Origin: Phallusia mammillata | Taxonomy: Eukaryota | DNA length: 64,000 nt | NCBI GenBank assembly: GCA_965637545.1 | Contig: OZ281494.1 | Span: forward strand, 21,452,001 to 21,516,000 | Direction of reading: 5' to 3' | Part shown: positions 3,949 to 61,571 of the stretch, piece after piece | How positions within the stretch are numbered: position 1 is the stretch's first letter | Layout of the letters: each line of letters begins with the position of its first letter | Notes under the pieces: model-generated | Seen by the model: the letters and a program-made list of their open reading frames with translations, nothing else | What the model was told of the DNA's origin: nothing | The model's database searches: none | Program-made: the position numbers and the translations under genes

Positions 3949-6890
3949 ATGGACGCTCGACTCGTAGCCGCTCGACTTCCCGGGCTTGCGATGTACGGAA
4001 CCCCGTATCAGTCACCGCCTTTTCAGGGCTATCTTCCGTACGGACCCGCCGCGGCTGCTGCAGTAGCTGCTGCGACAGACCCATCGGCATTTTACTCACA
4101 CATGGTAAGTTACTGTCAAAAACATACTTTTCACGATCTTTGTAACAAACAAACAATATTAGCCGTCGAAAAAATACTTATGTTTACAAAATGGCCGGCG
4201 CATGTCATATCTATTCATATTTTACGTCTTTGGTTACGGAGCCAGATTGTTACACGGAAGTTCATCAGGCGTAATATTGTTATTATTATGTTGAACTAAT
4301 GTTAAACCTGAATAACTTTTGTTGATGGTTGTGTATGTAGGCTACTGTATTTATGTCATTGGCATACAATCCCATCAACTTGCTCATTGGTGTATGTGCA
4401 AAACATATGGCCTAAAATATAAACAACAATGGCCTTGCTTTATATTTGCAATTTTTGACGTTTTTACTTTCTAGGGCCCCGGCGATAATTCCGAAGCTTG
4501 GCGGGCAGGACTGTCTCAAGCCGCCGCCTACTACGATCCCGCGGTGGCTGCGCACTACGGATACGGGTGGGTATATGTTTTGTATTATTAACATTGGTGA
4601 TGGACGTTTCTGCTTTTGTTTCGTCAAGTAGTTTTGTTTTGCAAAGCTGATTTTGTTGTCTTTTTAGGTACGGTCCAATGGGCTTGACCGATGGTGCACG
4701 CCGAAAAAATGCCACCAGAGAAACAACTTCAACATTAAAGGCTTGGCTGAACGAACATCGAAAGAATCCGTACCCAACAAAAGGAGAAAAAATTATGCTC
4801 GCCATTATCACTAAAATGACGCTTACTCAGGTTCGTGCAACCAACAATTTAATGCAGATTTGGGAATTTTTTAAAGATTTTTTGGGATTTTTTTGTGATT
4901 GCATTATTTTTGTACGTTCATATACATTTTTACATTAGGTGTCAACCTGGTTTGCAAACGCTCGTCGTCGACTAAAAAAGGAGAACAAGATGACCTGGTC
5001 ACCACGCAACAGATGCGGTGAAGATGACGATGATGAAGATATGGATGATGGCAACCACAGTATCCCTAACAACAACAGTCGGTCTTCAACGCCCATCGGA
5101 AACGACAGCGATATTTGTTCTCAACCAACAAACAACCCCATGGTTCCGCCCGGCGCCCATATACGTCGTGAAGTTGTGCGGCCAAACGGACACAGCAGCG
5201 GTGGCGAAAGTTTGTCGGATGAGAGCGCGGTATATTCCGATCAACCGGAAAATTCACACCACGTCGATAAACCAAGCGAAAACAACGATACTGCCCAGTC
5301 CGAAGCGAACAACAACGGAAAAGAATCGCCGAACTCAGGTACCTTGTTTATTAAAAATGGCGGCGGTTTAACAGATGTTGTTTAGCGGTATTCGAGTACG
5401 CTATATTAAAAGTTGGCAGCAAAAGGCAAGTAATTCACACTGCAGGGTCACGGCCCGGTCACAAAAAGTGTGAACGATTTAGCCTTGTAATTAGTTAATA
5501 CATGCATGCGCCGTCATGACGATTTACTGACAAGCGGTGAGCGTTGTATGCCATCACGTGTCAATAACCCTTACACGATGAACTCGCAATGAACCATTGA
5601 CTCACCTCACGTACAAGATTGGTTTATGCAATAGTTTTCGAAATTAAAATCGTTTACTTTTAGGATTTACCCGACTCAACGAAGAACACCGAGCAAGACA
5701 GCTATCTTCACATTTTGCTCGCCATGCAATTCACCCATATGCAAACCCACGTAGCTCCCCATCAGCAATTCCCAGCAGTCTTTCACCTTCTGTCCATTCT
5801 ACTCTTCGCACTGGAATGCCCTTCAAAGGAAGCGTGTCATGTCACCTACCGACCTCGCAACCGCCACATCGCATTTTTCACCCCGGACATAACTTGCCTG
5901 CTCAATTCAACCCGGCCGCTGCTGCTTCTCTTATAGCTGCCTCAAGGGGCCATACTTTGCCGCCGCACGTAATGGCCGCTCTCAACGAACAGGCGCAAAT
6001 GCATCATTACCAGCAAGCGTTACAACATCTTCCTGGCAACCCTATGCGCATTGGTCAATCTGACGGACATGTATCGGGAAGCGAAAGTCCATCACCATTA
6101 TCCCAAACAGCTTCTAAATCTCCACAAACCCCTTCAAGTACGACTGCCTCGTCAACTGGTTCATCTTCACCTCCTACCAAACCAAAAATTTGGTCCCTGG
6201 CTGATGTTGCAACAAGTGACGACAATCCGAAAAAATCTGAAACAAATTCCCCCCCAGGATCAGCAAGAAGAACTGAAATAAACTTTCAAAATGATACAGG
6301 GGCTGTAAGAAGTTGGATGGATGATGTTTTGCATCAACGAATAACCGGACTTTCGGGAAAAACACCGACATCTCTATCTAACAATGTTCCTATGACGCCC
6401 CAGCAGTTGCACCAGTTAGCCATAACTTTAAGTTCCACCCATTCTCAAGGCAACCACATGTTGGATCACCAGCATCTTGTGAACGAGGGTGTGCGAATTC
6501 CTACAGGTTTTATGGATGTATCGTCGTTTCATAACCACACGAACCTGATGCGCCAACAAGTTTTCAACCTCAACCAGCGTAAAGACTCGAAAGGTGGTTA
6601 AATATTTAAGTCACTTATAACAGGCAAAACGTAATCGAGTGAAAAGTTAACGTGATATAGTTTCAAACGGGCAACCACGTTTTTTTCCCTTTGTGTTCTT
6701 CACTAAAATATGGTATTCATTTTTAGATTGTGTACCCGATGACAATGATTCGTTACACTCATCTGACACACAAGACCATCATCCGAATGGCAAAACCGGT
6801 AAGTGAAACTTTATCACATATGCCTAATTATATGATAGTTCTTGAATTAGCAGACTTTTTAATTGACAAATTTTGTGTTTTACAGATTAA
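3949..6890 (+). CDS. Irx: Iroquois-class TALE homeobox protein, paralogue 1 (~605 aa). Exons 3949-4104, 4475-4566, 4668-4830, 4939-5338, 5664-6593, 6727-6798, 6886-6890
   Basis: All introns are GT-AG with consistent phases (0,2,0,1,1,1). Homeodomain [44 protein letters not shown]|[16 protein letters not shown] has the TALE PYP loop and WFANA. It is followed by an acidic stretch (DDDDEDMDD) and a canonical IRO box [12 protein letters not shown]. The last two small exons are less certain; an unspliced form would stop at 6601. Confidence 0.93.
4668..4992 (+). other. Irx: Irx-1 homeobox, split by a phase-0 intron (4831-4938) between Gln and Val before helix 3
   Basis: ACTCAG|GTTCGT...ACATTAG|GTGTCAACCTGG; translation is continuous across the junction. 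Confidence 0.95.
6179..6217 (+). other. IRO box ([13 protein letters not shown]) of Irx-1
   Basis: Direct translation matches the Iroquois-family KPKIWSLAE-type motif. Confidence 0.9.
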
Positions 6891-9800
6891 AACCAACTTC
6901 GGAAAATTTGTCAATGAAACCCATCAGCGCAAATCATGCTGTGATATTACCTTACTGCTGGAAATATGCATCGTGGAAACATGACTGTTTCTGACTGAGA
7001 GCGTCTGTAAGGGTCGGAGGCCGCTTAACAATTTTCTAGTTTCGTGAAAAGCTGCTACAGCTAATCTACATTCGTGGCAACATTGACGAAAGCCTCCCAC
7101 ACCAGGATTTTCGACTAAGAAATGTCAACTAAGGCAGGTTGTTATTGGACATAAACCAGACGTCAACATTGGTTTACAACACATAACGAGGTACTTACAT
7201 GTTGTGCTGCCCAAGCTGCGCTCAAACTCCATGTTTGAAAAGCACATTTTCAGTTTCCAAGTATTATCCATTCTTTCTTGTGTGTGCATGTATACTTTGC
7301 CTGTGTCTTATTTTGCAACTGCGAAATTGACTCGAGTCGAAATTAGATATATTATTGTTCGCTATGAATGGTTGTGTCAAAGTTCACGTTTACTGTCGTT
7401 TTTGGTTATTTAGCGCATCATGAAAGGCAAAATAAATATGAAATATTCCAACTAATATCTGCTTTCTTTTTCTAAGTGTTTCGAAACAAAAGATAAACAT
7501 TGTTTTCAATGTTTTATGGCCTGTAAAAAGATTGCCTAGCCGTAAAGGAACGACTTGTTAACATTTAATTATGTGGCGAAGGATTTTCGCAGTGCGATGA
7601 GGGTAGATGATAAAAGAAGTGTAAACAGTACATCCGGTGACCGGCGCTGTTGTTAGTGGCAAGCGCTTGTCAAACAACTCGGGAGTGCGGAAAGATTATG
7701 GACAGGTTTAGTTGCTATTGTGAACTAAAATTGCTATTGTGAAAAAAATTCAAAAAAATCTCGGTTATTGAAATCTGTAAGATATCATTTAACAGGACAA
7801 GTTTCATTGGAGGAAACCTGACTTGTGTTTATAAATTTAAAAAGCTACAATGTTTTAATGAACAATTGTTAATAAATTTCTTTCATCACGACGCCATTTT
7901 GAAATGTTGTGGTCGTGTTTCGATATTATGGTCTAAACATGTTGAAACTGGTTCTTTGCCCGTCTTTTGGAAGTAACCTGAAGCCAATGGTCAATCAGCG
8001 TTCTTTTAATAATAATCAATAATATCAATTCTGATAAACTAGTTTAAAATCTAATTGTTATTGATTTCTAGCACTAATACAACAAATGTGTCAGAGGCCT
8101 CGTGGCGAGGTTTCCAGACTTGCGCGCATTACTTACAGAGAAGAGCAGTGTGGCTGTCACTTTAATGCTGTATGATATTTTCAAGTAGGGAATTTTAACG
8201 GCGATTTGTTGATTAATAATGTATGTTCCACATAGCCGGTATCTGTTTGTTAGATGCTTGCTGTCTTGGGACTTCTCTCATTGGTTTCGCCTTTGAAGTT
8301 GCCTTTTTCACAACAGTTCTATTCACGCATCACCTTCATGCACACATCTCGCTTCCCAGACGTACTTAAGATAGTTAGATATATATACTACCGGTAGTGT
8401 AAATGGTGGAAAGCTCACACAAAAAAACAAAACTTGATTTTAGGAAAAAAAGTCACGTAACTATGAAAAATACTTTAATTTGATTAAAGGGCATTTTACA
8501 AAACCAAAAACTGCCATGCTTTACGTATTTATGTGTATTCTTTTCAAACATATTTTGTAACTTTTCATATTTTTTTACACTTTGGTTAACATGAATACAA
8601 TAACTGGAAACAGAAAATCAAGTGGGCTTAATAGCAATCCTCGTAAATGGATGCTGAACTATTCTCACGAAGCAACATGACAATTACGTTGTATTTACAA
8701 GATAATTCAAAGCAGAAATTGTGATTCGGTTTGTGAGCATTGAGAAACAGCTCGCTCACCGGGATTGACTCGTAATAGATAATAACAGTTCGTGTGTTAC
8801 GAATATTGAATTACTCGTAGGCATCAACGTACAAACTAAGTCCTCAATGAGCAGTACAGTGAGCTGGAGACTGAAAAACGTGTTAGAGTTTGAATGTCTG
8901 GGGAGAAGATGGCTGTAGAGTGAAAATTTAGGGATTTATGGCAAAACTCATTGCCAGTTGACAATAGCTGGTTTTTGAAGGCAGTGATTTATAAGATTCG
9001 AATTAAATTAGGGCGACACCTGGAGTTTTTGCTCGCGGTTGAACGCATTGCATTGTTGTTCTATGTGGAAATTGATGTAAATTTGTTCCGCCACAAGACG
9101 ACACGTCAGCTGAAGTTTGTGAAATGTTTGCAGGAACACGACACAACGTTCGTGTCAATTACGTTTGCGATATTCACCTCTCCTGTAGCATTTTTGGACA
9201 AATATTTTTAAATAGGAATATGACATTGCATTGTCTGAATATTCTTTGGAAACCTAATAAAATTGTACGTTTTTCTATTTACATTTTTCGGGGTTTATTG
9301 ATTGTTTTTCTAAAAAGTTTTGTCTAAAAAAATAAGAAAGTTCTGATAACACAGCAACACTTGATTTTCTTCGATAAGCCTAAATTACACACAACGTAAA
9401 AATTTAGTGGCACATTTACAGCAATATATAAACCCTTGATGTGTATACAAACATTGCCCAAATGCGCCACCTTATCAACATGTATTTGTTGCCGAAGAAG
9501 GATTACACATGTTGTAGTTGGTGCAGAAAGGAGCAACACCAAGTCCAACACTCTAAATGTGTTGAAACGTATTTCATGTTGCAATTACCACACATGAGTG
9601 GATTGTGCTGCGCGACTGGTTTGTATAATCCAGCCTCGACCATACGCCATACACACTAGCGGATACGCTGGGCGCAGAGCGAGAGAAATTTATTAGTGGC
9701 GTGAAATTGCGTTATAAACCGGTCAAATCGCGTAAACAAGCAAAGGAAAAGGCGCAGATTAAACAGGATTAACCCCGATAGGTGCTGCTTGAAAGATCCC

Positions 9801-12800
9801 GATGTGACGTCCACAATATGTCGATTGCCCCCGGGTTGACCTTCGTCGACTGCGTGTTACGTCATGTCAATGACAACTGTACCGAGTAACCTAATCCAAA
9901 GGCGCCAAGGCTAGAATGCATAAAGTATAGTCCATAAACAGAGCGAACATCTGTGGAATTATAATGGGATTTTAGCCGTGAGTCAGGTAATATACTGATA
10001 TTTGGATTCAATTAGGATGCAGTCGCCAAACCAGACATGCAGGATCTAAATTTAAATTTGTTTTACTTGTGAAATATTTATATCTACACACAAATATACT
10101 GCACCAAACAACAAAGCTGTGTAAAATAATTCCTACACAATTGGTTCTTTTTTGACAGATTAACAAACGTCCACTGAGGAACATTTTGCCGCCTGTTTTC
10201 TTGCCAAGTGAAGAGCGTTTCTTTACCTCAACGAGATTGCGGTTTTGTAACTCGTGAGTCACTCTTTGTACCATAAATATTTACGTGTACGGAGCGGAAG
10301 ACAGGTGCTCAGACAAGTGTTTGGTTAGTCAGTACAACTTAATTTGGCTCATCTGTTGAATGTAAATTCAATTTGAAACCAAAAGAATGGCACTGTTTTC
10401 ACATCATAAACGTAACAACAGTGGTTTATATTATGCCTATGTATGGGCTTTGTTAACGCTGAGTGACATTTTACAGAAAATCTCCTTAACCAACTCAAAT
10501 TATAACACGTTAGTGCGAAGCAACTGGACGCCTCTAAACAAAATTAGTTTCGCTCTGTTTCATCGCCCTTTCGAACTGATTCGTTCCGGGGTTACCACCG
10601 AATTATGCCCAGAGCAACATTCTGTCCTTTTCCGATAGGTACAAAAACAAAGTTAGTCACAATTAGTACAAACAATACGTTTTAACTTGTTCACCCGACC
10701 AATTTCAAAATTTTTTTTATAATCGTGACAATACGTTTGAGTAAAATTGCAGTTTAAGTATGAAATATAAAGCAGGTTCTTTTAGGGCAAAATATTGTAA
10801 TGCACACCTCAATACTTTGATGTTTTCAATGCGTTGATGTTTGTCACCTTTTTTCAAAGCGGGCGTTGTCTTGACATTTATTGTTCAAACAATTGCCGCC
10901 TTTGCTTACACGGGTAATAAACAGTTTATGAGCCACCGAGTGCCGACAGCGTTCATTCCCTGTAACACAACTAATCACAAGTCAAAGCGATAAAAAACGT
11001 CATAACTTGAACAATTCAAATGTCCAATTAGCCGATCGTTTTCAGCAGTTAGGTGACAGTTTTATGGCGGCAACGTTCCCATGCGATACTAAATTGCCGT
11101 CATTGATGTCTGCGCGCCTGCAAGGTAGCTTCTTTAAGAGAATCCCTGAAATGTGGACTCTTTGCCAGAGCTACGGTTTACCTTGTGTTTCTGGGCGGAT
11201 TTACTGTGAGACATTTGTTCTGGTTTGGGAGTCCGTGCTAATAACAAATTTAAACCACAGCGTTGTGCCTACATCTTCTTCTGCACTTTATGATGTTTTG
11301 ACAAGTGTAAGGAGTGAAAACAGATGTTATACCAACGTACCAGTTTAATTAAATTGAACATGATTTTGTGCGACACCTAGTGGGGTTAACAATCAAAATA
11401 GGTTCTTCAACAACAAACTTTCAACAGTTAAATATAAGGCTTGTTAACATTCTTGCAGCGCAGTTACTCACTGAAGGTAGTGCAAGAAGTGGAACGTCCG
11501 CTACAGATGTTTTTACTGCCTGGCGATAACGACTTGATTACAAGCAGTAAACCAAGTAACAAGCGGTAACTGAGAGGCAGGATCAACAAATCAAATAAGT
11601 GGTCCCGTTTGGTTTGACAACTTCACAGGATTTTTATGTACTTGACCGAACGACATGTGTTCAACAAAATACAGTAATGATGGCCAGTCGTTAAAAACTC
11701 TCACCACGCCAAGACAAAACCTATTCGACGATGCATGGGCAATTACCACAGTTCTTCTGCAGATATTTGACAGCTATTTTTTTCTATTTTTTTTTTTTCT
11801 AATAATGTACAAACTGTTGTATAACGTACAACGAATGGTACACTGAAAGATGTTTCAGCTTTTCTGCAAATGGTCCGAATGTGAAGTAGGCATATACGCT
11901 AAAAGTTTGTATTGAAGCTGCAATGAAGGACCAAACCTCTGTTCTGGCATTTGATCCCAATTTTGATGTCCCTAAATAAATAAAATGAAAGAATCCTATT
12001 AAAGTCGTAACGCTCATGAGGTCACCGCGCTGACGTGTAGACCTGTTATTGTAACAAAGTTTTGTGTTTTGTCGAATATCAAATCCACGCTGGGATTACG
12101 ATACATGACGTGTTTGTGTGTTTTGATTGTGCTTGGGTTGACTCTTTCCTCTATGCAACACACGCAAGCACAGAGCACTTTAGGCTAAATACATTTTCGG
12201 GGGTTTTAAATTGCCTTCATAATGTTGGCCGCTGTTTATAGCTGCAAGAAAGGCTCATCTGCAGAGCTATGAACGGCTATTTATGTCACCACATGATCTT
12301 CCCCTCAGAGTAGTGATATCGTTCTACGATCAAACACCGTCATATGATTATCGTTTGTTCCATCTTGTGTTGCGGACGTTACAAAATAATCCGTGGTCGC
12401 GTCTTTGCCCGCTTCCTTCGTTGCGTCACAAAGCAGCGAATCAGTTACGTGCGATTTGCGTTAACCCGGTTCCGCTTGTCCATTCGTTTATTTTGACAAG
12501 ATTTGCCCGGGCGCTCATCGCAACTTCGTGTTCCCTTTATTAGCGTCGTGCGGATGCGACAGATGGGAAACCGTAGCGTGTGTATATGTTTTCAAGAGCC
12601 GATAAACATCGCGATACGAAGCCATGAACTATACGCCGAATTATTGTTGCATTGGCCAGGCCGTAAGTGAACATCACTCGACACTAAGATAGGGCGATAA
12701 AATACAGAAAGACTTGAAATATTAATGGCCATCGCTTTTATCAAGGATTATCTCACAGGCGTGCTTGTATCCTGGTAAAATACTCATGAAACATGTCTAC

Positions 12801-54173: not shown

Positions 54174-54976
54174 CAGTGCTCTTCAAACTTTTTAGTGGCA
54201 TGGAACCCTCAAGGTGTTTTGTCAAACTTTGCGGAACCCCCATAAAATAATTTCAACCAATGTAATAGGCTACATCAGGGGTTCCCAAACTTTTTTGGTC
54301 TGTGGCCCAAATGTCTATTTAATAGCGATTCGTGGCCCACCACGTGCTGTAAATTTGGGCACAAACAAAAAAATAACTCAAAAACAGGCGAAATTTTCCA
54401 GCAACTTACTTTTAATGAGATGCATGCTCCTGACATTTGGCTACAAGATTTAGAATTCTTTGCAAAAATTACGTTTTTCAAAACAAAGCGCATAACATCT
54501 ACAGTATTACAAAACAGTAGAATCTATTCAAATGGCTCTGTGGCCCATTGAAAATGTCTTGGTGGCCCACTACTGGGCCATGGCCCACAGTTTGGGAACC
54601 ACTGGGCTACACCAAAGAAAAACATGTATTTTTACTTAACACACCCCAAGCACAAAATATAAGTTGACTTCAATTAAACGATTCACTGAAACGCATTGCC
54701 ACGTTACTTGTAACCGTCGTTTCTACATTTATCTCGCAAATTTGCCAGAGTGTATAGGGCTGTGTTTATTACGTCACAATTGATCAATGGTGCAACCAAG
54801 GTTAACTACTAGATTGTACCGGCGAGCATTGCTGTTCGCAACAGTGATATTGTTATGATTCATATTTGTACAACAAACCGCTGCGAACCCCCCGAGCAAC
54901 CTTTAAAGATCACGGGACCCCTGTAAGGTTAGTACGGAACCCTAGGGTTCCGCGGAACCCCGGTTGAAGAGCCCTG
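54174..54976. mobile_element. hAT (Charlie-like) MITE, host of a nested insertion
   Basis: TIRs CAGTGCTCTTCAAAC (54174) and GTTGAAGAGCCCTG (ends 54976); subterminal GGAACCC repeats and the palindrome GGAACCCTAGGGTTCC. TSD is degraded. Confidence 0.75.
54276..54604. mobile_element. hAT (Charlie-like) MITE nested in 54174-54976
   Basis: TIRs CAGGGGTTCCCAAAC and GTTTGGGAACCACTG; 8-bp TSD GGCTACAT/GGCTACAC with central TA; subterminal TGGCCCA repeats. Confidence 0.88.
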
Positions 54977-55088
54977 ATCTAAAATAAATACGTCCTGAAA
55001 ATTTTTGGCAATACAAGTTCGATTGCTAGTTTAAACAATGTCATTTTTTTGTTTACAAAAAGGAACAAAGCCCGAAACCAACTATATC

Positions 55089-55269
55089 CAGTGGCGGGGT
55101 TCAGCCGGTTCGCACCGGTTCCATAGAACCGTCTTACAAAATGTTGTGAGATCAGAGAACCGGTTAGCATTACTGGTTACTGACTGTCAATGAACTTTTT
55201 GTAACAGAACCAGCTGAAAAATATGACTTTTGTGATAGAACCAACTCACAAAAAATTAACCCACCACTG
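55089..55269. mobile_element. hAT MITE (CAGTGGYGGG TIR family), copy 1
   Basis: CAGTGGCGGGGTT...AACCCACCACTG. Left flank ACTATATC; right flank ACTAAATC, followed by a duplicated CCACCACTG+ACTGTATC. Closely similar to 59323-59502. Confidence 0.85.
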
Positions 55270-55957
55270 ACTAAATCCCACCACTGACTGTATCCCGTTT
55301 CCGTGGATATGGGTCATGATTGGATTTGTTTCAATTTGTGGTGACAATTTTCACACAAAAGGTCAATGCTATTTCGTCTAACGCAGTGGTTCTCAAAGTA
55401 AGATAGTTTCAATTTTCTGGGGGGAAATTTTTAGGAAACACTCCTTTGTTTCAAAGAATTAAATATGCTGCTCGGAAACGACTTTATATTTTGAGACTCA
55501 AATATTACAACTGGCAATTGTTAGTAAACCGTTATCAACAAATACGGTTATAAATAAACCATGGGGCAACATTCGTTGTGTGTAAAGCGATGAAGTAAAG
55601 TGACGAGCAGAATAGGTAAAATCCGTTTTGACTTCTGTAGGCTTTTGCAGAAAGTCAGTGCCAATGCACATTTCAAAATACAGCTACAGAAAAGTTTTTG
55701 CTTGAGCATACTTTTTTATACAATGGATAATGATTGCGCGATTGCCGTGAAAGGAATTTTAAGTTTTATTGCTTTTTCGCAGACGTACGTTGCTTTGTGT
55801 TTCATTTTAATCCTTATGGTTATGTAAAGGTATAACTATCATTATACTGACCTAACCAAGTGTGAAGAAGCTTGGCGCAATTACAATAGTTTTCCCATTA
55901 ATATTTAATCTTATTTTGAGGTATCGAGCGCGGTTTGGACTACTCGTCAAAGCCAAA

Positions 55958-58900
55958 ATGAAGTCTCTGTTCAATCCGAGGGTTTGGATAATTCTTTGTA
56001 ACTTATTGCAAATAGTGTTTTGCGGTTGTAATCAGCAAACTAACTTCGATGTGTCAAGGAAGTGGCGTGAAAGTGCAAATTCAGACAGAGGCGATGAGGG
56101 ATATTACTTTGTCGGAAATTCATTCCGATCTTTAAATTGTTTCAGTTTTCATCAATGTTCTCTGTTTTGTGTAAAGGACAGCAGGTAGGTCGCGGATTTG
56201 ACTGTTACAAGATAGCATTTATACCGCGTATTTAGGATGATACATAATTCGAATTGAGTTTATCATTTCAATTGTTTAACTTGGTGATTTTGGTATTGTT
56301 TCTTTACTGCTTTACCTTGACTAAAAATGGGTTTAAAATTGTTAGCAGCGGATTAAACCGTATTCGCAATTCTGAATTTGTATTACAATATTTTTAATTT
56401 GCATTTTTTTTACTCAGATGCAAATCGTTTAACTATCTCTCGGACGTTGGAAAATGTGAATTAAATTTGGAAGATAGATCTGCATTTCTTGAGGCCGAAT
56501 CAACCTGGGTGTTTTTTGACAATCAGTGGCTGTTGCAAGAACAAGGATTTGTGCAAAGAAAAAGTTCAGCATACTGCAATCGCGAATGTTTTGAAAACAA
56601 TTTGCCGGAGGTGCTGAATTAAAAGTGTGTTGTCAGAAATACTTGAGTTTTGTCAACGATAATTTTTTTAGATTTTAACAATTTCTTGCGATCCAAAATG
56701 CAATCCTGACGAGATTTGCACCTTATCGATGCCACATGGTGATACTACTTGCCTAAAGACTAAGTTTGAAATTACCGGTAAGACAGAATGGTGGGTAGGC
56801 GACCATAAGGAAATAATTAGTGACTTTTGTGTGTTTATAAAAAATGTCAATTTCGCCTACGTGTAGTAAATTTATGGACTTTTAAGTCTTTTGTACCGAT
56901 TTAGGGAAAAAAGCTATTTTTTTATTTACATGAAAACAAAAGCATTAGGATAAAATATATCGATTGGCAAACACAATTTATAAAACATGCGCCACGCATT
57001 GGAAAAGGTCTTGGTTTGCTTGTTGATGGTCTTCGTGCTGGAAAAAAACAGGCCAATCCATGCGTTCGGCGCAACAAAAGTCAAGACTAATGTAATGTAC
57101 GATTGTATACGGTTATTTTGTTGTTGTCAGTTTTTGTCTAACATTTTGTTTCCTCTATGGTAGAAACATACTACACCGATTAAAGACTTGTCCACACGCC
57201 TTTGCAGACCGGTGTAGACCTGTAGTTTTCAGTTGCTGCAATTTTTAGTAAAGACCAGCATAGAAAATCCGACCGGTAAAACACGTCTGTCCTTCACAAG
57301 CACCATAACCACGATTACACGTGCACCACCATCGCAGCTTACAGCACGAAAAACTGGGAGGCAATTAAGCATGTTTGACGTAATAATTGTGTAAAACACA
57401 TACAGGAACATGACTGTTTAAGCAACTACGAAAAAATTTTTCTGTTTCACTTTTAAGTGATAGAAATTTTGGAATTATCGGACCAGAATTGGAATTATTG
57501 TTTGTTTGATTGTCATTTTTTAAGATTTTCTCTTGCCATGGTCTGAATGGTCTTATTGGAGTCCGTGCAGTGCAACTTGTGGCAATGCTGTTCAAACTCG
57601 CACAAGATCATGCGGTCCCCCAGCTCAGCCGTGGATGTGCCAGGGATCGGACACTGAGAAAGTTATTTGTGAATTAAATCTCAAATGTCCACGTAAACAT
57701 CAACATAGATATCTTAAAAGTAATTATCTAGCTCACATTACAAAACAGCCATGTTTCACAGATTGGTCAGGGTGGGGTGAGTGGTCAACTTGCTCAACAC
57801 AGGCAATATGTGGTGAAGGGTTCAAAAGACGGAAAAGATCTTGTATTCCTAATACTCTTAATCCATCCGTTTGTCCTGGTTCCGAACACCAAAATGTAAC
57901 TTGTCAAGCTCCTTCTTGTACAAGTATGAAATTGAATGCTGAAAGATAATATACAACTCTAAAAAAGTGGCATAAAAGCAATTTGTTTATGTAGCACCTC
58001 TAAAACTGACGAACGGAAATTATGGACATGTTTTGGTGTACGACGACAGTGTTCCATTTTCACCGCAATGGACTGGCGTCTGCAAGGTTAGATGACTTAA
58101 CTTAAGTCTATGGTTTGGTTTAAAAAACGCCTTAACATATTTTCAAAGGATTTAATATCGGACGAAGACTTACATGAAGTTTTAAACAAAGTTTGCAAAC
58201 AGTTGGGAATGTATATGGATCACCCAGATAATGCAGATGACAGTTCAATTATTGAAACCGTAACGACATAAAATACAAATTAGTTTACAAACAATGATCC
58301 ACAGCGTAACCTTTTTCCACTTAACTTTCATCTTAGATATATTTAAAAGTTCGAAACTGCTCAAAGGAGGAACCATTTCTTGTTCAGTGTAACCACGAAA
58401 AATGGCAAAGTTACCAGGATTGTGCGGAGCTACTGCAAGTACAATGTACAGGAGAAAAGCGTTAGTTGTCTTATTTTATTTTGTTACACAAATTTACCTA
58501 AAACTAATAAATTAAGTTAAAAGGCTGAAACATTCCGTTTTCGCCGAAAACTTTAAATACAGCGTTGAAGAGGTAAGTATAAAAGCTTTTTTTGTGGTCT
58601 GTTTTTGGACAAGTTTAGTAATAGGCCTGTGAATAAAACAAACTTAAAACCTTGAAAACTAACATGTAGGTTTCTTCGGGTTCGCGCTTTTATTTATTTT
58701 CGTATTTGGTCAACTTTGTTTTCATGCGCAGAAGTACAAAATCACTTCCTGGCTGAGGTCACCTGGCAATATGCATACGATTTCTGCGAGGAAAGATATC
58801 GACAGATGTGTTCTGCCGCCGAAATTTTTCCGTATGGAAACAATACTGCAATTGAGTTTTATACTGGTGACACGTGGATACCAATAAGGTAAACACCCTC

Positions 58901-59124
58901 CCATTTAATGTTTGGTCGCAACCTGTTATGTAATAGTCATTTTGTATCCTGTACCTGTAATTGTTGTTTATTTAAGAGATTCTTACAATGACTGGGTCCA
59001 AGTTGGAACAGATCATCCGCAGTTGGGAAACAAACACAACAGCATCTGGTCAGCCCCACCTTGGGGTCTATCACCTGATATCGAACATTGGAAAGGAAAT
59101 TATTTCTGCTGTTTACTGGATTGA
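55958..59124 (+). CDS. Secreted mosaic protein (~495 aa): signal peptide, PAN/Apple, Cys-rich/EGF-like, TSP1, TSP1, SRCR, atypical lectin-like domain. Exons 55958-56184, 56418-56610, 56672-56777, 57525-57692, 57762-57923, 57995-58086, 58149-58259, 58337-58460, 58732-58888, 58977-59124
   Basis: Ten GT-AG-bounded exons join in one frame (1488 nt). Motifs: hydrophobic leader VWIILCNLLQIVFCG; PAN CSLFCVKDSRCKSFNYLSDVGKCELN; TSP1 WSEWSYWSPCSATCG..TRTRSC and WSGWGEWSTCS..CG..RRKRSC; SRCR LKLTNGNYGHVLVY..WTGVC..VCKQLG..YLKVRNCSKEEPFLVQC..DC..VQC; terminal TWQYAYDFC..MC..WIPIRDSYNDWVQVG..PPWG..YFCC. No TM segment. Confidence 0.85.
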
Positions 59125-59322
59125 ATTTACTGGATACCAAATTTTGAGAATCTATCCCCACATAATACAGTTTGTGCTTGTCATCATACATGAAAAGTTC
59201 TTAGTAATAACTTTTAATTACATTTGAAATCCAGCAACCAGCACTTCTGTAACTCGTTCGAGGTGTTTTTCAAGGTACAGCTACTCCCACAAACTAACAA
59301 CGTGATAGGTTTGCGTTATGAG

Positions 59323-59502
59323 CAGTGGTGGGATTCAGCCGGTTCGCACCGGTTCTATAAAACCGTCTGACGAAATTTTATGAGATCAGCGAACCGGTTA
59401 GCATTACTGGTTACTGTCAATGGATTTACTGTAACAGAACCGGCTGAAAAATATGACTTTTGTGATAGAACCGGCTGACAAAAAATTTGAAACCCACCAC
59501 TG
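59323..59502. mobile_element. hAT MITE (CAGTGGYGGG TIR family), copy 2
   Basis: CAGTGGTGGGATTC...GAAACCCACCACTG with 8-bp TSD GTTATGAG/ATTATGAG; same family and orientation as 55089-55269. Confidence 0.88.
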
Positions 59503-60982
59503 ATTATGAGCCTCACTAAAGTTTGTAGTTCAACCTGCTACCTCAAGATTCCTTGATGATAAACTTAAGAAAACACCACTTGTATAAATCTGTTGAATAC
59601 ACTGTTGGTTTATTTGGTTATCAGCGACAGAAATATTTCTTATTCAAATAAACCGTAATTAAAGAGAAACAGTAATTCGCAATTAACACAAAAGTACAAA
59701 AGAATCAAAAACTAAAAGTTAGTGTTTAAAGGTATAGAATAGATAACGATTCACAAAAACGGTAAGTCTCACCTCTAATAAGTCCGACCTATTTTTGCCG
59801 GCTAATTAATTTTTCTATCGGCCAGTATGCCTTATGGCGGCGCTAGAGCTCGAGGTCAGGGCGCCAATTTTGGTTTGGGCGGCAATCAAGGGCCGCTGAC
59901 CTGCGCCCAGATTTCAGTTAAAATCGGTCCACGCGCTTCTAGTTAAACTCAAACACTTTGTCATTTTTTTAGCCTAGAGTAAACTGACGCAGGCTGGCTA
60001 TCTCTTTAGCTCCTTCGCATCCAAACGTTGACACAAAATTGTCTTTGTTTGCAAAAATTGCGGCATATATACTAGTGTGTGAGAGGAATTCCCACTGATG
60101 TGGTCGGTCAAGTGCATAATGATTGGCCAGGATGACCTTGGCGCATAGGCGCCGAGTTTTACGAAAATGCAAGGTTGCGACGAAAAATATGACGTCACAT
60201 TAAATGGGACGTCACCAATACGTGCAGGACAAGTTCAAAGCCCAACAAACTTTCAATAGAATGCAACGTTCGTCAAAACGAAATATTTAAAATAATATTT
60301 ATTTTGCAACACGTTGCTGTAACGTTTATAGTTGGTTTAGCAACGTTCAAAAAATGTTTCGTCAAGTGGTTGTTGCTTTGTATCACCCGAGGTAACCATT
60401 TATGACAAAACATTAGCATTGTACACAATAATGACCAAACATGTACTACTAAACAATTGGGAGTACTAATCAAAACAGGTTTTTGTTTTAAGGTACGTAT
60501 TGTTACTTCTTTGGCAGCACGCTTGTTTTTAAAGCAAATTTGTTTCTAATTTTCCTCAGATTTGACGATATTTCGTACGATACCGCTGCAAACTAACCAA
60601 AATATCCACGGTGGCCGCCACCGTACTTTACAAACCCAATGTGACGGTACCACCCCGCCACCGCCTACTTGGCGCATACTGCGCGAGAGCAGCGTATATT
60701 CTACGTCGTACCGGAAGCTATTTTTATCGCCTGTTGTATGTGGCAAATGGCGGACCGCGGTTCATATCTGGACCTTAGAGGTGTTGGATCTGGACCTCGA
60801 CGATATTTTAATTACGGCAACATATAGACTATTATTTGTCTGTTAATTACTTAAACATTGCTATGCAGAGGCCGTTTTTTAAACTGGGGATATATAGCGT
60901 ATAACGATAGAGTCCGCATAGCGATTGATCAGCAGGCTGCAAGGAGCCCAAAGTCCTGCCAACATCTTATGTGAGTTTAGAT

Positions 60983-61571
60983 CAGTGGTTCTTGACCTTT
61001 TTCCTTGCTGCACCCCTTTCAAATCTCCAATCAATTTTCGCACCCCTTTCTGTAATTGTATTTATATAGAACAGCGGTTCCCAAACTTTTTCATATTTTT
61101 TTCAAAACGGTCCCTTTGCCATTATTTTGAGGGCTCGCGGTCCTTGAGCCTAAATATGTATTTCATAAAAACGAAAGTTGATTTCAGGATTTTAGCTAGT
61201 TATGCAAAATTTCGCATAAAAATCATCCAAACACAGCTTGTGACATCACAGACAAGACAAATGCACTACAATTGTGCGCGAACAATTACATTTTTGATAG
61301 CATTTTTGATTCATAAAGGCTATTGTTAAGCAATGGAGACAGTTGATTCTCAATTCTACTTTGATTTAAACTTATTTAGTGACACAAACGGACGCCAAAT
61401 AAGATTATAGAATTACTTAAACCGCTTCGCGGTCCCCCCAAAATTGCCTCACGGACCCCTAAAGGACCGCGGACCCCAGTTTGGGAACCGCTGATATAGA
61501 ATATACCTAACCAGCTTTAATGATTTAGCATACCCGCACCCCCTAGGAACAGTTCTCGCACCCCTTAGGGG
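60983..61571. mobile_element. hAT (Charlie-like) MITE, right end truncated, host of a nested insertion
   Basis: Left TIR CAGTGGTTCTTGACC; GCACCCC subterminal repeats on both sides of the nested element; no right TIR found. Confidence 0.6.
61072..61493. mobile_element. hAT (Charlie-like) MITE nested in 60983-61571
   Basis: Perfect TIRs CAGCGGTTCCCAAACT / AGTTTGGGAACCGCTG and a perfect 8-bp TSD ATATAGAA on both sides. Confidence 0.92.

Follow-up and report, generated by a model that had tools for sequence, protein, structure and literature searches.

Several kinds of extracellular module meet in the protein described here. PAN domains bind proteins or carbohydrates, and the Trp-Arg ladder of thrombospondin type 1 (TSP1) repeats binds sulfated glycosaminoglycans and matrix proteins; both are classic adhesion modules. 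Group-A scavenger receptor cysteine-rich (SRCR) domains recognize polyanionic and microbial ligands, and Link modules and compact C-type lectin-like domains (CTLDs) bind polysaccharides or proteins without Ca2+. We describe a gene that joins such modules in the ascidian Phallusia mammillata. It lies at 55958-59124 on the forward strand of a 64,000-nt stretch (C1:21452001-21516000; hereafter, the window), is expressed, and is predicted to encode a secreted protein with a PAN domain, a small four-Cys module, two TSP1 repeats, an SRCR domain and a C-terminal DUF7495 domain. A preliminary description, based on the window alone, had proposed a hidden ten-exon gene at this position.

Gene structure and transcripts

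Joining ten exons from the window sequence, which contains no N letters, yielded one coding sequence of 1488 nt with a single terminal stop, encoding 495 amino acids, 36 of which are Cys. All introns are GT..AG. Frame, length, Cys count and hydropathy were computed on the joined 495-residue protein; domain and fold searches were done exon by exon or on relatives. The gene is laid out as follows:

55942..55957, forward strand: minimum 5' untranslated region (UTR); RNA-like contig X1 record 1 begins at 55942, and no ATG precedes 55958 in frame
55958..56184, forward strand: exon 1; start codon, predicted signal peptide (residues 1 to about 24) and N-terminal half of PAN
56418..56610, forward strand: exon 2; C-terminal half of PAN, then a linker with two Cys
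56672..56777, forward strand: exon 3; small four-Cys module
57525..57692, forward strand: exon 4; TSP1 repeat 1, phase 1-1
57693..57761, forward strand: intron 4; 69 nt, in frame and stop-free, last 24 nt present in one RNA contig
57762..57923, forward strand: exon 5; TSP1 repeat 2, phase 1-1
57995..58086, forward strand: exon 6; putative SRCR part 1, ends in WTGVC (Cys 1)
58149..58259, forward strand: exon 7; putative SRCR part 2, KVCKQLG motif (Cys 2)
58337..58460, forward strand: exon 8; putative SRCR part 3, four Cys
58732..58888, forward strand: exon 9; N-terminal half of DUF7495
58977..59124, forward strand: exon 10; C-terminal half of DUF7495 and stop codon
59125..59168, forward strand: minimum extent of the 3' UTR; unspliced through the stop, with X1 record 2 reaching 59168 and X2 record 9 reaching 59160

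Three small P. mammillata runs (X1-X3), none of them recorded as RNA, contain 12-17% of the words of this stretch. When their contigs were aligned to 55200-61100, they covered exons and left introns and unique flanks empty, except for 24 nt of intron 4; the runs therefore behave as RNA. X1 record 2 (490 nt) runs from 58337-58460 to 58732-5888x and on to 5897x-59168, giving the exact exon 8-9 and 9-10 joints and continuing past the stop into the 3' UTR; a 4-nt shift at the 9-10 joint reflects a TAAG/TAAG ambiguity. Records 8 and 9 of X2 give the same exon 8-10 boundaries. In X1 record 2, exon 8 is preceded by 17 letters that we attribute to exon 7. The genomic match of X2 record 7 and of X3 record 16 stops exactly at the exon 5 donor (57923); beyond it the contigs continue for 63 and 31 letters, respectively, consistent with exon 6. 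X1 record 1, which begins at 55942, and X3 record 15 cover exon 1.

RNA thus confirms the proposed junctions in part: the 8-9 and 9-10 joints and the exon 5 donor are seen directly, whereas joints 1-2, 2-3, 3-4, 4-5 and 6-7 rest on homology because exons 2, 3, 4 and 7 lack RNA cover. With a frame open across ten exons, canonical splice sites throughout and these joints, the hidden gene of the preliminary description stands, and 55958-59124 is one real, expressed gene. A mini-exon at 58524-58572 within intron 8 (AG before, GTAAGT after) was considered and rejected, as an eleven-exon model breaks the frame and the RNA contig passes from exon 8 to exon 9 without it. An Rfam search of 54500-60500 returned no match.

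Start phases of exons 1 through 10 are 0, 2, 0, 1, 1, 1, 0, 0, 1 and 2. Both TSP1 exons (4 and 5) are therefore symmetric 1-1 exons, and phase-1 introns lie at both ends of exons 6-8, the SRCR block, in agreement with the phase-1 borders pointed out earlier.

Intron 4 is read through by an open reading frame (ORF) at 57533-57949, and X3 record 16 begins at 57738, 24 nt inside the intron. This could represent a minor retained form or simply pre-mRNA. Retention would add 23 residues, including one unpaired Cys, between the TSP1 repeats. The orthologues described below have no linker at this point: in the Clavelina protein P0153 the exon 4 match ends at residue 239 and the exon 5 match begins at 241, and in Ciona the two exons are likewise separate.

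The protein is predicted to be secreted, carrying an N-terminal signal peptide and no other hydrophobic segment. On the Kyte-Doolittle scale residues 4-22 form the sole hydrophobic stretch, and the hydropathy scan revealed neither a transmembrane (TM) segment nor a tail of the kind that accepts a glycosylphosphatidylinositol (GPI) anchor. Downstream of the gene, no third TSP1 exon, TM exon, TSP1-like ORF or coding-like ORF was found within 4.9 kb of repeat-rich DNA, and no X1-X3 contig maps there, i.e. there is no read-through to a later exon. These results bear out the earlier suggestion of an unanchored, secreted product.

On each side of the gene lies a direct copy of a ~180-nt, very high-copy element (55089-55257 and 59323-59502); the two copies are about 90% alike. 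Its words reach a depth of about 1e6 in a DNA run and occur in the RNA-like runs as well. In the downstream copy, CAGTGGTGGG stands at the start and CCCACCACTG at the end, giving it a miniature inverted-repeat transposable element (MITE)-like appearance.

Domains of the protein

The two TSP1 repeats are firmly identified. Exons 4 and 5 each match the Pfam TSP_1 profile (PF00090, cut-off 21.6 bits) over its full length, positions 1-49, with E 1.2e-11 (45 bits) and E 1.1e-7 (32.4 bits), respectively, so that both repeats recognized in the preliminary description are retained. Read from the translations, the repeats carry six Cys, a Trp ladder, an RxR strand and a CSxTCG-like turn: exon 4 with WSEWSYW, CSATCG and RTR, exon 5 with WSGWGEW, KRRKR and an atypical CSxxCG spacing.

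The PAN domain is firm in the orthologue and weak in the P. mammillata gene, as judged from profile scores. Exon 2 matches PAN_1 (PF00024) at profile positions 37-58 with E 0.0023 and 18.2 bits, under the 21.4-bit cut-off, and exon 1 alone has no Pfam match. The Clavelina orthologue P0153 scores 30.9 bits, above the cut-off, and a Ciona copy is also called PAN_1; the PAN assignment made at the outset is therefore kept as probable. The EGF module placed behind it is not supported. Exon 3 encodes four Cys rather than six and has no Pfam match at E<=10 and no PDB sequence match, and the corresponding region of P0153 matches no EGF family at E<=1. Exon-wise searches of PDB sequences with exons 1, 3 and 6 gave nothing useful.

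Exons 6-8 are best described as a six-Cys, group-A-like SRCR domain, an assignment supported by Cys pattern and profile similarity. Group A is distinguished by six rather than eight Cys and by coding over more than one exon; here the translations place six Cys over three exons as 1 + 1 + 4, with the spacing of group-A domains, as the preliminary description had suggested. Scored exon by exon, exon 8 matches Pfam SRCR (PF00530) at profile positions 63-99 with 19.2 bits, under the cut-off of 26.1, and exons 6 and 7 do not match. Exon 8 also has a weak match to the CD5L SRCR domain, whereas exon 6 alone matches nothing in Pfam or the PDB. KVCKQLG in exon 7 resembles the SRCR motif VVCRQLG, and this exon has a weak colinear match to the Ciona homologue. 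The Clavelina proteins P0150 and P0152 reach 25.5 and 25.8 bits against the same cut-off. A family profile (A8), built from an alignment that includes window exons 5, 6, 8, 9 and 10, retrieved the SRCR domains of CD163 (E 7.5e-10) and DMBT1 (E 0.012) among PDB sequences.

The C-terminal end had been called lectin-like. Exon 9 matches positions 11-59 of Pfam DUF7495 (PF24325) with 20.5 bits and exon 10 matches positions 61-107 with 24.7 bits. The halves are colinear and sum to 45 bits, above the 27-bit cut-off of the 109-position profile; this end is therefore DUF7495. Orthologues score 49-59 bits, with 59.3 bits for P0153. Lectin_C (PF00059) gave no match in the exons at E<=10, and the EPN, QPD and WND motifs are absent from the translation. 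Likewise, Xlink (PF00193) does not match the exons of this gene, and no CTLD appeared in the PDB sequence search; two DUF7495 relatives, P0004 and P0008, have weak whole-protein Xlink scores with no significant stretch. Resemblance to C-type lectins is thus confined to the fold.

To describe that fold we used a relative, P0030, whose identity to exons 9 and 10 is about 39% and whose two DUF7495 domains are modelled by AlphaFold with predicted local distance difference test (pLDDT) values of 85-95. Foldseek ranked the Link modules of aggrecan G1 first (E 2e-3, probability 0.89), followed by LYVE-1, TSG-6, NKG2D, mannose-receptor CTLDs, invasin/intimin and EgtB. With an independent structure aligner the best 50 matches all belong to the CTLD superfold. 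They include the C-domain of Bdellovibrio Bd2740 (Z 7.6), TSG-6 Link (Z 7.3, root-mean-square deviation 3.3, 86/98 residues), aggrecan G1 (Z 7.3), invasin (Z 7.0), LYVE-1 (Z 6.6) and the tunicate lectin TC14 (Z 5.6); CD44 also matches among Link proteins. From this model, we read DUF7495 as a compact CTLD/Link-like domain of ~95 residues that would lack the long Ca2+-binding loop. The lectin-like label accordingly survives for the fold but not as a canonical C-type lectin.

A 47-position profile of the N-terminal half of DUF7495 (A4), built from exon halves, retrieved 462 proteins at E<=0.001 from 1.84 billion representative proteins, many of them tandem arrays. Those with a named source come from diatoms (Seminavis, Thalassiosira, Skeletonema), the octocoral Dendronephthya and ascidians, the remainder being marine metagenome contigs; ESM Atlas neighbours agree with this range. 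An alignment of fourteen tandem-DUF7495 proteins (A6) is clean and defines a consensus domain with six Cys. One 443-residue protein from an ENA metagenome contig, P0133, couples DUF7495 with an NAD:arginine ADP-ribosyltransferase (ART) domain. Literature searches on DUF7495, and on Link or CTLD proteins in diatoms and tunicates, returned nothing relevant.

Relatives in ascidians and in the P. mammillata genome

Window exons were compared one by one by BLAST with the best 150 of the 462 A4 matches, which singled out P0150 from Clavelina lepadiformis (349 residues) and P0147, a partial model from Ciona intestinalis. A word search from P0150 then led to P0153, a Clavelina protein of 558 residues in which Pfam finds PAN_1 (30.9 bits), TSP_1 twice and DUF7495 (59.3 bits). 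Its sequence is identical in its two records (CAK and UniRef). Nine of the ten window exons align with P0153, in unchanged order and at 29-48% identity; the match to exon 3 is weak (E 0.05), and exon 7, which has no BLAST match, was placed by eye. The exons align with P0153 as follows:

Exon 1: residues 8-75, 34% identity
Exon 2: residues 78-140, E 1.6e-11
Exon 3: residues 150-184, weak; four Cys there too
Exon 4: residues 186-239
Exon 5: residues 241-291
Exon 6: residues 294-320, 41% identity (also P0150 residues 140-168, 48%)
Exon 8: residues 359-395
Exon 9: residues 416-450
Exon 10: residues 452-497, 48% identity

In Ciona intestinalis, locus L027 (AP043573.1:2980429-3001744, reversed) contains at 4599-11313 two tandem copies, each colinear with the window exons; copy A has no match to exons 3 and 8, and copy B none to exon 7. 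The public annotation breaks this locus into four partial genes: PAN, DUF7495, TSP_1 and SRCR-DUF7495. The 254-residue model P0147 includes a stretch of ~40 residues resembling a translated intron. P0153, an "unnamed protein product" at NCBI, and the Ciona pair (LOC108950125 and neighbours) share with the window protein the order signal, PAN, four-Cys module, TSP1, TSP1, SRCR, DUF7495, and the Ciona pair has the same exon partition as the window gene. P0153 differs by a third, C-terminal TSP1-like repeat and by loss of the first SRCR Cys; Ciona differs by having two tandem copies where P. mammillata has one.

Clavelina also has P0150 and P0152, each named "SRCR domain-containing protein" and 349 residues long, which match exons 5, 6, 8, 9 and 10 at 41-48% identity over a TSP1-SRCR-DUF7495 core. 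Behind their signal peptide, a short collagen stretch of Gly-X-Y type (weak matches) and a predicted long helix or coiled coil take the place of PAN, the four-Cys module and the first TSP1 repeat. Their layout is reminiscent of collectins and class A scavenger receptors. Hydropathy revealed no TM segment or hydrophobic tail in the relatives either. Apart from one unnamed contig protein, word-index searches started with P0150, P0153 and P0147 led only to proteins of Clavelina and Ciona, and did not find P. mammillata's own protein in the protein libraries. By sequence comparison, the architecture is conserved in three ascidian lineages and is uncharacterised in all of them. The preliminary description had considered the product a candidate lineage-specific protein; it is not particular to this genome, and the whole architecture is kept in Clavelina and Ciona, where it is annotated "uncharacterized protein".

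The Ciona annotation raises the possibility that the ten exons are a mis-joined model of two adjacent genes, PAN-TSP1 and SRCR-DUF7495, or a decaying pseudogene. The four partial NCBI models would fit such a division, and RNA contigs bridge neither exons 1-5 nor exon 6 to exon 7. However, those Ciona models are flagged partial, one with apparent intron read-through, and Clavelina P0153 is a single 558-residue protein in both of its records. In P. mammillata the frame stays open from exon 1 to exon 10 and all splice sites are canonical. The Cys pattern is conserved, exon 6 has neither a start codon nor a signal peptide ahead of it, and RNA contigs run beyond exon 5 into letters fitting exon 6 and link exon 7 (by its 17 letters) to exons 8, 9 and 10. 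We regard a mis-join or pseudogene as very improbable.

Across the P. mammillata genome (240 Mb, 312 contigs), exons 8 and 10 are single-copy, as is the SRCR region when probed with Clavelina P0150. For exon 9, a copy with 57% identity lies on an unplaced contig of 1 kb (L008, C308:1-1000), and no partner resembling exon 8 or 10 was found for it anywhere in the assembly. No collagen-necked paralogue like P0150 and P0152 was found in this genome. At least six other DUF7495 loci are present, and the intra-domain intron position is common to them and to exons 9 and 10. The genome also yields a weak match to GH6, a domain not known in animals outside tunicate cellulose synthase, which, like the ascidian identity of the best homologues, agrees with a tunicate source.

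Among these loci, L001 (C1:11153768-11157037) has an ORF at 1480-2841 in which one large exon encodes one DUF7495 in full, a CUB-like region and the beginning of another DUF7495, so that the domain serves in a further mosaic. Exon halves of DUF7495 with the same intra-domain intron position also form clusters, either tandem repeats or tandem genes, at C2:14100324-14109647, C8:1993129-1999887 and C4:16328817-16339320. The genome search with P0150 also brought up dense arrays of TSP1-like exons at C2:31.93-32.05 Mb and C4:13.82-13.87 Mb, which are probably very large TSP1-repeat genes.

Proposed role and comparison with known families

We infer all ligands and the physiological role of the window protein from those of analogous domains. 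Once released to the extracellular space, a soluble protein with five binding modules would most simply act as a multivalent bridge. Its TSP1 repeats, through the Trp-Arg ladder, and its PAN domain would bind sulfated glycans or protein partners, the SRCR domain may bind polyanionic or microbial ligands, and the Link-like DUF7495 domain may bind polysaccharide without a classical C-type lectin Ca2+ site. Together, these modules could cross-link or decorate an extracellular glycan matrix, such as the tunic or the body-wall extracellular matrix, or tag microbial surfaces. We consider it probable, with moderate confidence, that this expressed single-copy gene encodes a secreted, unanchored PAN/four-Cys/TSP1x2/SRCR/DUF7495 member of a conserved ascidian family, represented in Clavelina by one orthologue and two collagen-necked paralogues and in Ciona by a tandem pair, and that the soluble protein binds glycans or polyanions multivalently, whether in the extracellular or tunic matrix or for the recognition of microbes.

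Several observations weigh against this assignment. Exons 2, 3, 4 and 7 have no contig in X1-X3, and the contigs that exist are of low depth, 3-6x. Scored exon by exon, SRCR and PAN stay below the Pfam cut-offs; the first Cys of the SRCR domain is missing from orthologue P0153, where Pfam calls no SRCR. AlphaFold modelled the closest homologue, P0150, from the shallow alignment A8 with a pLDDT of only 45 and so did not confirm the fold. The DUF7495 fold match is moderate (Z 5-7.6, Foldseek E >= 2e-3) and was obtained on relative P0030 rather than on the window protein, and the same fold does not imply the same ligand. Finally, the window protein and its ascidian TSP1-SRCR relatives lack Cys 3 and Cys 4 of the DUF7495 consensus (IC is replaced by IF, and the C before HS is gone). 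Joint absence of these two Cys is expected if they pair as one disulfide, and on the alignments it is a subfamily variant that would leave DUF7495 membership intact.

The two proposed settings draw on different observations. Single-copy conservation leans toward a role in the matrix, whereas P0150 and P0152, the Clavelina paralogues with a neck of collagen and coiled coil, would lean, by analogy, toward collectin-like recognition. In the immune sub-case, the protein would be a humoral pattern-recognition molecule or opsonin made by haemocytes or epithelia, with SRCR and DUF7495 binding microbial polyanions or glycans and presenting them to phagocytes or complement. Such a function would suit an SRCR domain related to those of CD163 and DMBT1, a C-terminal domain of the CTLD superfold, the TSP1 arrays present in properdin, and the collagen and coiled coil that precede TSP1-SRCR-DUF7495 in P0150 and P0152, as in collectins and class A scavenger receptors. 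The window protein itself, however, has no collagen or coiled-coil oligomerizing neck, and its gene is single-copy and conserved, not expanded or diversified, unlike many invertebrate immune families. A dedicated opsonin is thus conceivable but unlikely.

Alternatively, the protein could be a developmental or adhesive matrix component of larval settlement and metamorphosis, or of a gamete coat, comparable to Ci-meta2, which has three TSP1 repeats, or to TSP1-bearing Ciona sperm proteins; PAN and TSP1 would suit adhesion, and the Clavelina orthologue P0153 likewise has three TSP1 repeats. Ci-meta2 is described as an adhesive-organ protein that is secreted, contains TSP1 repeats and becomes up-regulated at metamorphosis (PMC13225635). 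The same paper mentions neither PAN nor SRCR (PMC13225635), and the search from the Ciona fragment P0147 reached no named protein. We judge this role improbable and retain the multivalent glycan or polyanion binder as the preferred reading.

The taxonomic range of DUF7495 invites a broader idea that we offer as a long shot. DUF7495 might be a Ca2+-independent, Link-like polysaccharide-binding module common to organisms that surround themselves with massive secreted coats of polysaccharide, namely diatoms, haptophytes, octocorals and ascidians, and the ascidian PAN-TSP1-SRCR-DUF7495 family might organize or patrol the cellulose and sulfated-glycan tunic. Its patchy range could then reflect horizontal acquisition, as for tunicate cellulose synthase, rather than repeated loss.

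Mosaic extracellular proteins of these modules are common in deuterostomes, so that nothing known is overturned. What is gained is a correct, partly RNA-supported gene model for a family that public annotation leaves fragmented or unnamed and, in Ciona, the main ascidian model, splits into four. The analysis also assigns a putative fold, compact CTLD/Link-like, to a Pfam family previously without known function, and suggests that SRCR, TSP1 and a lectin-fold domain are united within a single conserved secreted protein of ascidians, to which one lineage adds collagen-necked paralogues. Binding, expression and knock-out work in Ciona thereby becomes possible.

As the preliminary description had surmised, the domain order is that of no named family; literature searches for this combination found no paper, and its members are already in public databases as uncharacterised proteins. 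Likeness to known systems lies in the parts. Both window repeats are full-length TSP_1 domains with the WxxWxxW, CSxTCG-like and RxR elements of thrombospondin-1 TSR2-3 and the properdin thrombospondin repeats (TSRs), and the TSP1 pair of P0153 aligns to the thrombospondin-1 TSRs with E 9e-18; the window protein differs in having only two repeats in an otherwise unrelated architecture. The DUF7495 fold is similar (Z 6.5-7.6, ~95 residues, no long Ca2+-binding loop region) to the Link modules of TSG-6, aggrecan G1, LYVE-1 and CD44 and to the compact CTLDs of invasin/intimin D5 and the Bd2740 C-domain. Yet no sequence-level relation to these was found and the disulfide pattern is another, and the likeness does not imply hyaluronan binding. 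With the class A scavenger receptors and collectins (SR-AI, MARCO, SCARA5, CL-P1) and the soluble SRCR proteins (CD5L, DMBT1, CD163), the window protein shares a multi-exon, six-Cys SRCR domain, profile similarity to CD163 and DMBT1, and the combination of SRCR with a lectin-fold domain. In contrast to the scavenger receptors and collectins, it has no TM segment, collagenous stalk or coiled coil, and its single, divergent SRCR domain is paired with PAN and TSP1, a pairing that we know from none of the class A scavenger receptor, collectin or soluble SRCR families.

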